From Podarcis bocagei (taxonomy: Eukaryota), in NCBI GenBank assembly GCA_964188305.1, contig OZ076894.1: a stretch of DNA of 64,000 nt; one strand, 5' to 3'. The notes under the pieces were generated by a model. That model saw nothing but the letters and a program-made list of their open reading frames with translations, did no database searches and was not told the origin of the DNA. Made by a program: the position numbers and the translations under genes. Below, piece by piece: positions 3,111 through 57,214 of the stretch (position 1 is the first letter of the stretch; each line of letters begins with the position of its first letter).

Positions 3111-5199
3111 AATTCTTATCTGAGTTAGGTTCTGCCTTGGAACTGAACTGATTTTATGTATGCGCTGTTATTTTAAATTGACTTTTATATTTACAATTGC
3201 TTTTTTTAAAAATAGGATTTCATATGTGCAATCATTTCAAATGTTGTTTATATATGCAACTGCATATATCTTTATATTGTTAATCATTTTTAAAAATGAA
3301 TTATTATTAATATCGCATTGGGAGATGAGCAGGTGGATGAACCTCCAGTGTTGTGGGTGACATTATTAAAGTTCTATAATACTGTTGTCAGAATAGACAT
3401 TGGGATGGAATTGGCATCTGCGTCTGCCACCAGTAGAGGGGTAGGGCAGTATTGGTACCCTCCTAGAAGCAGTACTGCACTTCCAGGGTGGTAGAGTTCT
3501 GCACTGGCAGTGGCAATGCTGGTATGCATGTGCCTGTGTGGCCACCAACAACCCAAAGTTCCCTCCCAACCTGACTGCTACCATATCCTACTCTGTCCTG
3601 GTAAACACAGTGCTGCCACTAGGAGGGCAGCCATTCTGCCTGCCTTGTACATTGCTGCTGTCTGCTGCTGGGTCTGCTCCTTGTGTTTTGGATGTTGTGG
3701 CCTGTTTTTGCTAATAGGTGGAGAGAAGGCTTCTTGTAAGCAAATAAGGGGCTGCCACCTGCAAGGCAAATGTGATATTGTCCAGGATGAACTGTAGATC
3801 ACTGATGCTATGTTTGAGTGGACTTAACTGGGCATTGTAGTGGTCTGTAGTTTGCTCTTCTAGATCTGTCCCGTAATAGGTTGGTACCAATATGGATTTG
3901 TTTATCCCCCCTCCCCCCGCCTACACACACATTGTTGGGTGGCTACTACAGTCTGAGGAATACCCGAAGTAGATTTTTTAGTTGTGAGTCTCCGGCAAGT
4001 TTAAACAGATTAGGTTGTATTGTAGGACTTGGCAGGAGACAATGAAGTTTGTGTTGCGTGCAGCGGTGGAAGTTTGTCATTCCAAACAATGTTTATTAAG
4101 GAGTCACAGGAGGAGTTCTATGGTTAAGGTGTGTCACATTCTTGGTTAAAAAACATGATGATTCTATTCCTTATTTAGTGATATCACTGTTAAATTTGTT
4201 GTGGAAGATGTCTTGAGTGAGGAAAGTACACACTTTTCACATTTCATAAAATCTGAATGAAGGGCAGCTGAGCTGCAGCAGTTTAAAACTGGACATATTT
4301 TAATGCCGCATAAACAGTGCCAGCTGCAATTAGAGAGTAAAACTATTATTAGGGGGTGCCATCCTATCTGATTCTGCCAAACTTCTCCCAAGTCCTGCAG
4401 CCTACCTCCAATGCTTAATTAACTGTAATTAATAAAGACAACCAGAAGCCGCCTGCTGCAAATATTCTGTGGGTGTCTGCACCTCCAGGCTGCACAGATG
4501 CAAAAAAACAAGCATTGCTCAGGGATCCCCCCCCCCCACTTTGAGCACATTCAATGATAAAGCATATGGAAGGCCCTTTGCAGGTAAAAGCACAGGTTCT
4601 CACCAGCTGTTGAAATGAGTGTGCAAATATTGGGGACAGAGCCAATCATCACACTTTCAATACCTCCTGCACAGCAGCTATTTTTTCACAGATGAAATAT
4701 TTACAAAAAGCTAGGGAATAGATGTGGTAGTAGCAATGATTAGAATTTTTTGTACCAATGCAGGGAAGTGAGAGCCTTTCATATGCATTACGGATGGTGG
4801 CTTAGTTTTAGGACTTTAAATCAGGGTAGCCAATGTGGTGCTCCCCGTCCTGCAATGCAGCTTCCATTATTCCTTGCTGTTGGCCATGCTGTCTGAGAAC
4901 TGGAGGGCACTGGAGTCTAATAATATCTGAGGGCATTAATTTGACTATCACTGGTCTAAGTCTTTCCCCAACAAAACAATACTAGAATGCCATTCTTTAG
5001 CCTTTAACCCTATACCCACTTACCGGTAAGCCCCATTGATCTGAGTAGAAAAATATGAGATCACACTGTTAATATTTTGCAGTGGGTGTGGAACCTCCAG
5101 ATGCTATTTGACTCCCCACTCCCAGCCAGGATAGTCAATGGTTGAAGATGATGGAAGCTGCAGTCCAACAACATCTGTAGGACCACAGGTTCTCCAATA

Positions 5200-54075: not shown

Positions 54076-54469
54076 ACCCCTGGTACCCTGTCCAGGCACC
54101 TACAGGGCTCCTTCTCCTGCTGAAATTAGGCTTGAAAGTTGCATTCTGTTGTAACTAATAGAACAGTTTCTGGTGTGTGCTTGGTTGAGGGAGTGTATGT
54201 GCCCACAACAGCTTCTCCTGTTCTCAAATGTGCCCACTCCCCCAAAGGTTTGGTGGCCCCTTTTATAAATACTTACACCAAGAATAGCCAGTTGCATGAG
54301 CTTCCATTCCATTTTCTGTAGCAGATACAGTTAGTCGCTACTTGTTGATGTACAGGGCAGGTAAGTTCTGTTTCTTCAAATGGAGAACTACAAGGATTAG
54401 ATTCAAAAAAATAAAAAGCGGCAGAATCTAGAATATAAGAAGCCCCAATATCAGACTCAACTCTGGTTT

Positions 54470-54472
<3 letters not shown>

Positions 54473-54518
<46 letters not shown>
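54473..54518. repeat. (TA)n, left part of the PLE target microsatellite
   Basis: Directly visible; further (TA)n tracts at 54694-54731 and 56056-56074. Confidence 0.97.
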
Positions 54519-54521
<3 letters not shown>

Positions 54522-54691
54522 GGTTTTGGTGTCTTCGGGTGTCTTCCCGTGTAAGAGTTGGGGTGTCTAGGCGACGTTTCGACGAGGTCTCACTCGTCAT
54601 CGAAACGTCGCCTAGACACCCCAACTCTTACACGGGAAGACACCCGAAGACACCAAAACCTGCATTCCTGTACCCGTGAAAATCTACGAAA

Positions 54692-54693
<2 letters not shown>
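54519..54693. mobile_element. Short fold-back PLE insertion: minus-strand 3' end joined to plus-strand 3' end
   Basis: 54517-54582 is the reverse complement of 54600-54665; the sequence is essentially identical to the termini of the larger insertion; (TA)n on both sides. Confidence 0.85.
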
Positions 54694-54733
<40 letters not shown>

Positions 54734-54810
54734 TTTCGTAGATTTTCACGGGTACAGGAATGTAGGTTTTGGTGTCTTCGGGTGTCTTCCCGTGTAAGAG
54801 TTGGGGTGTC

Positions 54811-54854
54811 TAGGCGACGTTTCGACGAGGTCTCACTCGTCATCTTCAGGCTGG
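54811..54854 (-). ncRNA. Minimal hammerhead ribozyme motif, mirror copy
   Basis: Exact reverse complement of 55967-56010. Confidence 0.75.
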
Positions 54855-55370
54855 TGCTTTCGGCTTCTTGTTACTGGAACAGAGCAGGATCTCAGTGTTT
54901 GAGTTCCTATAAATACTGTTGAGGGGGTGTGGTGCAGAGAAGAAGTTCCCAGGTTATTGTGCCTTTTCTTCTTTTGTTCTTTAATTACTTGGGGGATATC
55001 TTGAGTGATATCTTGAGTGGTATTCTGAGTACCACTTAGGTGGGTCATTAAGTGTGGATTAGTTGCTATAGCTTTCGTGTCTTGACCTTTTGAGCTAGTG
55101 AAGAGATTTTTCTGAGAAGATGGCTGTACTGCACTTAGTTGTGCTCTGGCTTGGCTTCGTGTATAGGGGCGAGCTGTGGTTTTGTGCCCTGTGCCAGCCA
55201 GATCTGTGTAGGGATTGCAGGGGGGTGCAGCATCCGGAGGTGCCACTATGGTTTGGCTACCGGATGGAGTCTGTAATTTATCTGTGGAGAGGGTCTGGGT
55301 TTGGGTCTGGTGTGGTTGATAGGTGATGGCGTTCTGTGTGCCTCTGGTCCTGGTGTCGGTTTTTGTGGGG

Positions 55371-55988
55371 ATAGAGATAGAGAAACACCCTCACAACATG
55401 AACAAGCGTGACGACACGTCCCGCCTGCCAGACATCTGGAAATTAGCCCTCCCCACAAAAACCGACACCAGGACCAGAGGCACACAGAACGCCATCACCT
55501 ATCAACCACACCAGACCCAAACCCAGACCCTCTCCACAGATAAATTACAGACTCCATCCGGTAGCCAAACCATAGTGGCACCTCCGGATGCTGCACCCCC
55601 CTGCAATCCCTACACAGATCTGGCTGGCACAGGGCACAAAACCACAGCTCGCCCCTATACACGAAGCCAAGCCAGAGCACAACTAAGTGCAGTACAGCCA
55701 TCTTCTCAGAAAAATCTCTTCACTAGCTCAAAAGGTCAAGACACGAAAGCTATAGCAACTAATCCACACTTAATGACCCACCTAAGTGGTACTCAGAATA
55801 CCACTCAAGATATCACTCAAGATATCCCCCAAGTAATTAAAGAACAAAAGAAGAAAAGGCACAATAACCTGGGAACTTCTTCTCTGCACCACACCCCCTC
55901 AACAGTATTTATAGGAACTCAAACACTGAGATCCTGCTCTGTTCCAGTAACAAGAAGCCGAAAGCACCAGCCTGAAGATGACGAGTGA
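55371..55988 (+). pseudogene. C-terminal 205 codons of the PLE ORF (end of GIY-YIG domain plus T/P/Q-rich tail); no native start
   Basis: Part of ORF 55323-55988; its first 16 aa come from the inverted arm. Open without interruption to ...QPEDDE*. Confidence 0.75.
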
Positions 55989-56010
55989 GACCTCGTCGAA
56001 ACGTCGCCTA
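55967..56010 (+). ncRNA. Minimal type I hammerhead ribozyme motif (PLE-associated)
   Basis: CTGAAGA 55972-55978, extra T, stem II GACGAG/CTCGTC (55980-55985/55992-55997), GAAA 55998-56001, palindromic ACGT as stem III, predicted cleavage after GTC at 56005. Stem I is weak (2 clear bp). Confidence 0.75.
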
Positions 56011-57214
56011 GACACCCCAACTCTTACACGGGAAGACACCCGAAGACACCAAAACATATATATATATATATATACATGCTTCAATATAAAATTTTCAAAT
56101 CACTTAGAGAAGACACTCAAGTTCAAGGTTTTGCCTGCTTCATACTTTAAGCTAGTGGCATATTTGCTGCTAAAAAAAGCAAAACACATATTCACCCATC
56201 CATAGTAAGTTGTTTGCCTGAAGGTTGCATGGGTCAGATAGTCTGCATTGGGGGGCAAAAATCCTTATGAAGAAAAATCCTATGTTTCTTCAGCCCACAA
56301 ACAGATTGCAAATATGCCAAATAATATGAACAACAAAATAGATAATGCAGGTACAAACTCTTTTGGGGGGGCATGGCCATTTTTCACAATTCTCTTATTC
56401 TTCACAATATTTTACTGTGATGTGCAGGTCTCCATGAATCCAAAAATAACACATAATTCATAAATACAAATTAGTGGAAACAAAATATAACAAGCTGACT
56501 TAGGCTAGGGTGTTGCTGTGCAGTTGTAATGACTCAGTTCTGCTCAGTTAGAAACACTGAGGTTACATACACCAGACTATGAGGGAAAGGGTGTTGTTTC
56601 ATTTCCTGACCCCAGCAGGAACTGCAGGGATGGGCATTGCATGAGTGGTCTTGCCTAATATGCTGCTCCTAGAACTCTTACCCTGTTCCGTCTTTGATTC
56701 TCAATTCAGTAATATAAAGCTTACAATGGCTGTTGGCCATTCCTTTCTTTTTCTTTAAAGTTTCTTCAAAGCTACATACACCACACCAAACAGTGCTCAA
56801 AACTTGTAACAACACCATGAGTTTCTTCCAGGAAAGTGTCCTCGTTAGAGGTGCTGTCTTGTGCCCAAGATTGGGAGGGGGGTGGCCTGCAAGACCCACA
56901 CATGACATCATGTGCCCAGTTTGTATTGCATGCATGTGACATCGTGCATGCGATGCATACAGCACATGCAACGTCACATCATTGGAAGGAGGCCAAGCAT
57001 GTAGTCCAGCATGGTGCGGCTTCCCCTCTCACACTCAGGAGGAACCAACCACTGAACCATGTTGTGCTTCACTCAGTGATCAGCCTTCATCCACTTAGGG
57101 GACCCAGCCTTGTGCCAGCAGATTTTGAGGGGGCCAAAGACACCTCCGCCCCTAGAAGTTGGCATGCCTGGTCCTTGCCATGAAGCAGGAGGGAAAAAAA
57201 AGGAAGGAGGAGGA

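Follow-up and report, generated by a model that had tools for sequence, protein, structure and literature searches.

Hammerhead ribozyme motifs stand in mirror image to each other, on both strands, in one part of a 64,000-nucleotide stretch of Podarcis bocagei DNA (assembly GCA_964188305.1, contig OZ076894.1; hereafter the window), and we asked what these motifs are, how they came to be arranged in this way, and whether RNA read through them could cleave itself. The original prediction, which was made from the letters of the sequence, held that two complete and two partial minimal motifs are so arranged that dimeric cleavage could occur within one transcript.

Organization of the locus

The motifs were found to lie in four copies, A to D, of one repeat (Table 1). 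This element is a young, very high-copy Penelope-like retrotransposon (PLE) of the Penelope/Poseidon type, and its copies form the pairs A-/B+ and C-/D+ within (TA)n. The 3' ends of all four copies point outward, each adjoining a TA tract, and the truncated 5' ends meet head-to-head.

Table 1. Features of the PLE locus, in window coordinates
Feature	Position	Strand	Remarks	Evidence
(TA)n microsatellite	54473-54518	.	left part of the insertion target	sequence, repeat families
PLE copy A, about 83 nt	54519-54601	-	5'-truncated within the hammerhead core	sequence, repeat families
PLE copy B, about 92 nt	54602-54693	+	5'-truncated at G12	sequence, repeat families
(AT)n tract	54694-54731	.	separates the two head-to-head pairs	sequence
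PLE copy C, 640 nt	54732-55371	-		repeat families, sequence
Complete minimal hammerhead, copy C	54816-54849	-	ATG 54843-54841; putative cut after 54816	
Two filler bases	55372-55373			
PLE copy D, 682 nt	55374-56055	+	short form, 78 nt after the ATG, beside (AT)n	
3' end of the PLE ORF	55374-55988	+	endonuclease end and low-complexity C-terminal extension of about 175 aa	
Complete minimal hammerhead, copy D	55972-56005	+		sequence, motif search, descriptor
C3-A9, copy D	55972-55978	+		
Bulged U, copy D	55979	+		
Helix II, copy D	55980-55997	+		
GAA, copy D	55998-56000	+		
ACGU, copy D	56001-56004	+		
C17, copy D	56005	+		
ATG of copy D (A9-U-G10.1)	55978-55980	+	putative cut between 56005 and 56006	
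(AT)n microsatellite	56056-56075	.	right part of the insertion target	sequence

The copies differ in how much of the element they retain. Copy A keeps GA-U-helix II-GAAACGUC and the first 83 or so nucleotides after the ATG, with a putative cut after 54573, and its 3' end (..CCTGC) adjoins the (TA)n. Copy B, to which copy A is joined head-to-head, has GAAACGUC only, followed by the ORF start region and a long tail that ends in ..CGAAAGC beside the (AT)n. In copy C the 3' end of the ORF and a complete minimal hammerhead are preserved, and the sequence continues to 112 nt past the ATG, long tail included. The 5' truncation of copy D falls within the final conserved block of the GIY-YIG endonuclease (EIEKHPHNMNKRDD..). 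Copies C and D showed 100% identity over 612 nt, and the smaller arms, A/B and B/C, 98-99%. Both A and B carry a G in CCTGCAT where copy C has an A, suggesting that there were two insertion events, each of which left one head-to-head pair. Counted from the ATG, the copies end at +78 (D), about +83 (A) and +112 (B and C), and the difference of 34 nt matches the optional tail of 30-40 bp published for PLEs, which lies between two internal start sites of reverse transcription. AT-rich or microsatellite targets were also seen in related contigs, L002 ending in (AT)n and L003 in (TAGA)n.

Hammerhead motifs

The 34-nt motif CUGAAGA-U-GACGAG-(6-nt loop)-CUCGUC-GAAACGUC matched the window exactly twice, at the two places given for it by the original prediction (the complete hammerheads of Table 1), whereas 0.01 matches were expected by chance. 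Because the two are copies of one repeat, they do not count as independent events, and the statistics show a real repeat. A structural descriptor (CUGANGA, an optional bulge, helix II of at least 4 bp, and GAA) found no hammerhead-like motif beyond these two in the 64 kb. The partial motifs were likewise where they had been placed: the reverse complement of 54573-54601 reads GA-U-helix II-GAAACGUC without CUGAA, GAAACGTC follows directly at 54602-54609 (+), and the two meet at 54601/54602. The proposed spacing of 243 nt on the minus strand was confirmed by the repeat-family analysis. A chance motif was ruled out by the expected number of matches together with the conservation in relatives described below.

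The catalytic core (C3 U4 G5 A6 N7 G8 A9...G12 A13 A14...U16.1 H17) is exact in both complete copies, and in both helix II has 6 bp and is closed by G10.1-C11.1. An unpaired U stands between A9 and G10.1, as it does in the related contigs L001 and L002 and in PAc, the Poseidon_Ac element of Anolis carolinensis. There is no loop III, and in all copies a palindromic ACGU takes the place of helix III. Helix I consists of only 2 bp here (G1.1-C2.1 and C1.2-G2.2), which bears out the weak stem I noted earlier. The assignment to the minimal hammerheads of PLEs, which have nothing but the ACGU palindrome for a helix III and are believed to work as dimers, also proved right (PMC4209133). Taken together, these motifs are real, conserved PLE minimal hammerheads of the standard kind for their class, and their cleavage is putative.

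A search with Rfam models in Infernal, which had been suggested as a check, returned no hammerhead match at the gathering score or at E<=10 in 54300-56300. We give this result little weight, since a canonical-looking type-I hammerhead in L003 was likewise missed at E<=1. The same search matched miRNA-precursor models (MIR7723, mir-5014 and others) to 54603-54822 and 54654-54771 with up to 102 bits; all of these matches are below their gathering scores and are artefacts of the perfect hairpin formed by B, the (AT)n tract and C, with its TA loop.

The open reading frame of the element

In copy D the ORF is open from the truncation point, where it reads EIEKHPHNMNKRDD.. in frame, to a UGA stop codon (55986-55988) in loop II. 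Contigs of other genomic copies extend upstream of 55374 in frame with ..IIMEAI. A protein search returned six short representatives and, though it was exhaustive, no full-length PLE protein among them. One of them, P0005 (encoded on contig L002), includes the complete GIY-YIG endonuclease region, followed by the same block, with a Pfam GIY-YIG match below threshold (E = 0.008). Another, P0002 (contig L001), is 46% identical across the whole C-terminal extension and has the same HQPEDDE end. Pfam assigned no family to the window's ORFs of 221 and 71 aa, and no reverse-transcriptase sequence was found in the window; membership in the PLEs thus rests on the endonuclease end, the layout of hammerhead and ATG, and the insertion signature. 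Since the 5' ends of the copies are truncated, no more of the endonuclease than its last block remains. Among 126 metagenome matches, themselves truncated scars, there was no ORF of at least 300 aa after the hammerhead ATG.

The PLE ORF lacks a 3' UTR, its stop codon lying within the next unit's hammerhead, both in the window and in its relatives (L001, 59-730; L002, 155-907). The stop is the UGA in loop II in the window and in L001, and the core's own U4-G5-A6 in L002. The end of the ORF overlaps the putative ATG of the next ORF. An ORF that both starts, at this putative ATG, and stops inside the hammerhead means that ribozyme and coding constraints overlap with no untranslated spacer between them. 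The C-terminal extension is rich in Thr, Gln and Pro and has a dN/dS of about 0.5 against L001. In a separate observation, a 268-aa protein (P0001) has a Translin domain (Pfam E = 1e-28) fused to the last 100 or so aa of the PLE ORF at 89% identity, and is probably a gene model with an exonised PLE fragment.

Conservation in related elements

In L001, all 34 nt of the hammerhead are identical to those of the window, and 61% of the aligned codons of the preceding ORF are identical. Between the window ORF and L001, dN and dS were 0.04 and 1.13 at the endonuclease end, 0.62 and 1.17 in the C-terminal extension, and 0.39 and 0.31 in the last 25 codons, which run into the ribozyme. Such a drop in dS, from 1.17 to 0.31 towards the ribozyme, is what constraint at the RNA or DNA level would predict. 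L002 keeps both core boxes, and its helix II has changed from GACGAG/CUCGUC to GGCAAG/UUUGCC, that is, by two double compensatory changes and one change of G-C to G-U. Helix I of L002 has 3 bp, with the pair 1.2/2.2 changed from C-G to U-A.

Whether the core is conserved across the family's copies had been named as decisive for the prediction. The catalytic core was invariant in L001 and L002, and in thousands of contigs from reads of the same and related genomes no variant reached 10% at 55802-56055, as against 17 such variants at 55418-55801. L003 contains an old, decayed copy, set in a (TAGA)n tract, in which the core (now CUAAAGA, G5 to A) and part of helix II have been lost. A scan of metagenomes in which the core was fixed and helix II was left free yielded 106 distinct motifs; 44 of these had at least 4 contiguous bp of helix II counted from G10.1-C11.1, compared with about 6% of shuffles.

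Abundance and recurrence of the head-to-head layout

In one read run (X1), the summed word depth, which is not a copy number, was 1e5-1e6 on the element and 54-86 on the unique flanks, indicating a PLE family of very high copy number. Dozens of contigs assembled from the same genome's reads pass from antisense to sense at other break points and thus represent other head-to-head joints. Individual joints of this sort may be contig chimeras; that there are many of them, with differing break points, fits the view that insertion routinely produces this layout. Four contigs of host-associated metagenomes (L011, L040, L054 and L077) likewise contain two hammerheads of this type on opposite strands, at distances of 60-730 nt, and these are the same head-to-head PLE scar in other animals. 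Similarly, Cervera and De la Pena (2014) described pairs of minimal hammerheads 100-700 bp apart on opposite strands (PMC4209133), and head-to-head, 5'-truncated scars with their tails outward are usual for PLE insertions (PMC8557442, PMC11167929). The layout had been predicted to be an arrangement for cleavage within one transcript; it is the usual PLE scar, recurring with other break points and in unrelated contigs.

A further point concerns position 55887 (mirror position 54934), upstream of which many contigs in all four runs diverge into a common other sequence, ..CCAGAAC.TTGGAGGC.A.A. This divergence suggests a second subfamily, or a non-autonomous element, that has just the terminal 170 or so nt, the hammerhead and the tail, in common with the present element.

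Origin of the locus

We consider it very probable that 54519-56055 consists of two head-to-head pairs of PLE insertion scars, and that the minimal hammerheads, a conserved part of the PLE, are passengers here and not a self-cleavage device. Each copy would be the 3'-terminal module of a tandem PLE unit, which runs from the end of the reverse transcriptase-endonuclease ORF through a minimal type-I hammerhead into the ORF of the following unit. Of this second ORF the module includes the first 78-112 nt, and the putative ATG would be formed by A9, the bulged U and G10.1. In the proposed course of insertion, the PLE endonuclease would nick both strands of AT-rich DNA, and reverse transcription would begin within the RNA, at either of two sites separated by about 34 nt, giving short or long tails. 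The two converging cDNAs would stop early and be joined in the middle, and the result would be a palindrome with its tails outward and one hammerhead on each strand. By analogy with relatives that have been tested, any cleavage would be weak and confined to sense transcripts of full-length copies in tandem, where two hammerheads would act together or the element's protein would help. In read-through RNA at this locus the long perfect hairpins would bury the hammerheads.

The original prediction proposed instead that in read-through RNA a complete core (copy D on the plus strand, copy C on the minus strand) pairs through ACGU with a substrate half (copy B or copy A, respectively) and cleaves in cis. 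Its structural logic is sound: on each strand a complete motif is indeed accompanied by a partial one that has GAAACGUC, the geometry of a double hammerhead permits a composite active site (PMC4209133), and the PLE protein is able to assist cleavage (PMC11167929). In a double hammerhead, however, the active site is composed of the 5' helix-I strand, core, helix II and GAAAC of one copy and the GUC and 3' helix-I strand of the other. Only the partial copies could therefore be cut, after 54609 (+) or 54573 (-), and not the complete ones, at 56005 and 54816, where cuts had been expected. Energetics also speak against cleavage in cis. With helix I at just 2 bp, the 4-bp intermolecular helix III was computed to add -3.1 kcal/mol to the two helices II, whereas the minimum free energy of the RNA from 54440 to 56110 was -1549 (+) or -1557 (-) kcal/mol, with individual hairpins of -143, -214 and -1306 kcal/mol. 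In this fold both complete motifs are base-paired to their antisense copies along their entire 34 nt, the half-site on the plus strand is paired at 8 of 8 nt, in the A/B hairpin, and the partial motif on the minus strand has 20 of its 29 bases paired with antisense. During transcription of the second arm the hairpin would zip outward from the center, so that the hammerhead of that arm would meet its partner on emerging. That the layout recurs elsewhere with arbitrary break points argues that it was not selected. As weaker evidence, from contigs alone, the flanks of the locus had zero depth in two runs that we guessed to be RNA, and one contig from a guessed-RNA run spans the family's cut site uncut. 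Self-cleavage of a read-through transcript in cis thus appears exceedingly improbable. We give scarcely more credence to a wider form of cleavage, in which truncated scars that carry a substrate half (GAAACGUC and the downstream strand) would be cut in trans or in cis by cores of the family with the help of the element's protein; if this were true, the thousands of scar remnants that host transcripts contain would serve as sites of conditional RNA cleavage.

Two other readings concern the palindromes themselves. The mirror-image structure might be an assembly artefact, in which a chimeric fold-back read duplicated a single truncated copy; the arms, after all, match at 100% for 612 nt, assembly is known to go wrong at PLE arrays, and none of the short-read contigs spans the structure, as contigs break at repeats. 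The structure nevertheless has the asymmetry typical of PLEs, namely the unique 76-nt extension of copy D, unequal tails, and the G/A difference between A/B and C, and many independent head-to-head joints occur in read-derived and unrelated contigs, which makes an artefact very unlikely. Somewhat less unlikely, though still improbable, is that the palindromes matter as a source of long dsRNA, their hairpins being diced into small RNAs that silence the PLE family and the hammerheads having no role. The predicted folds of either strand include perfect hairpins of 69-612 bp and the family is highly abundant and young, but neither of the two runs guessed to be RNA had any depth on the flanks, and a role of this kind would be a consequence of the scar and says nothing of its nature. 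Insertion scars with hammerheads as passengers remain our preferred reading.

Comparison with known elements

The marks of metazoan PLE minimal hammerheads are a nucleotide between A9 and G10.1, the pair G10.1-C11.1, a long helix II and a palindromic 15.2-16.2 (PMC4209133). The motifs of the window resemble these ribozymes in their CUGANGA and GAAA boxes, extra nucleotide, G10.1-C11.1 pair and long helix II (6 bp here), and also in the lack of a loop III, the palindromic A-C-G-U, the weak helix I and the location at a unit junction (pLTR). They differ in that helix I is usually 4-5 bp and has 2 bp here, a length shared with the PLE hammerhead of D. virilis. Minimal hammerhead ribozymes of metazoan PLEs were reportedly also the subject of work by Lunse et al. 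in 2017.

A close parallel in layout is offered by PAc. In its Repbase consensus the endonuclease ends in ..REAIEIHKH.DNFN.., the hammerhead reads CUGAGGA-U-G...C-GAAACGUC, and the ATG is A9-U-G10.1 (PMC11167929 supplement); the start codon precedes the cut by 26 bp (Frangieh et al. 2024, PMC11167929), and in RNA-seq not one read begins or finishes at that cut (PMC11167929). The window family likewise has an ATG formed by A9-U-G10.1 with the putative cut 26 nt after it, and an endonuclease end of the form ..EAIEI.KH..N.N. AT-rich targets, two internal start sites of reverse transcription, an optional tail of 30-40 bp, and cutting and extension of both DNA strands are shared as well. Reverse transcription starts at +111-118 in PAc and at about +78 and +112 in the window family. 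The two differ in that 126 untranslated nt separate the PAc stop from the hammerhead, whereas the ORF of the window runs on and stops in loop II.

Two features are only mildly new, namely the stop of the ORF inside the hammerhead and the extension of the PAc layout, in which the start lies in the ribozyme, to the window family with its putative ATG. The Anolis layout, with a putative start codon inside the ribozyme, thus extends to another reptile PLE family, and the overlap of stop codon and hammerhead, together with the falling synonymous divergence, provides a small handle on constraint at the RNA level. As a discovery the locus is of little weight, being a known kind of element and scar. 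It is a clean example of the PLE signature, with internal starts of reverse transcription, two tail lengths, extension of both strands into palindromes, and a (TA)n target, and paired hammerheads on opposite strands in the Podarcis bocagei genome are to be read as PLE scars.

Animal non-LTR retrozymes also have type-I hammerheads with a short palindromic helix III, two copies of which hammerheads are needed for activity (PMC7229834; Li et al. 2026 preprint), and their derivation from PLE pLTRs has been proposed (Cervera and De la Pena 2020, PMC7229834; Li et al. 2026 preprint). Retrozymes, however, consist of head-to-tail repeats of 170-400 nt with canonical hammerheads and circular RNAs, unlike the head-to-head pairs and minimal hammerheads of this locus. 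We rejected a retrozyme here, as the repeat analysis found no head-to-tail tandem and the direct repeats are only pieces of the inverted pairs. Another animal genome contained a different arrangement. In L003 (GCA_029215685.1), the canonical-looking type-I hammerhead mentioned above lies at 3890-3940 (-) beside the decayed PLE tail and has CUGAUGA, a 5-bp helix II with a 4-nt loop, GAA, and a 10-nt palindromic helix III. It sits between two direct repeats of about 60 nt (near 3725-3800 and 3985-4050), which are about 260 nt apart, and the hammerhead and repeats together may represent a retrozyme-like tandem.
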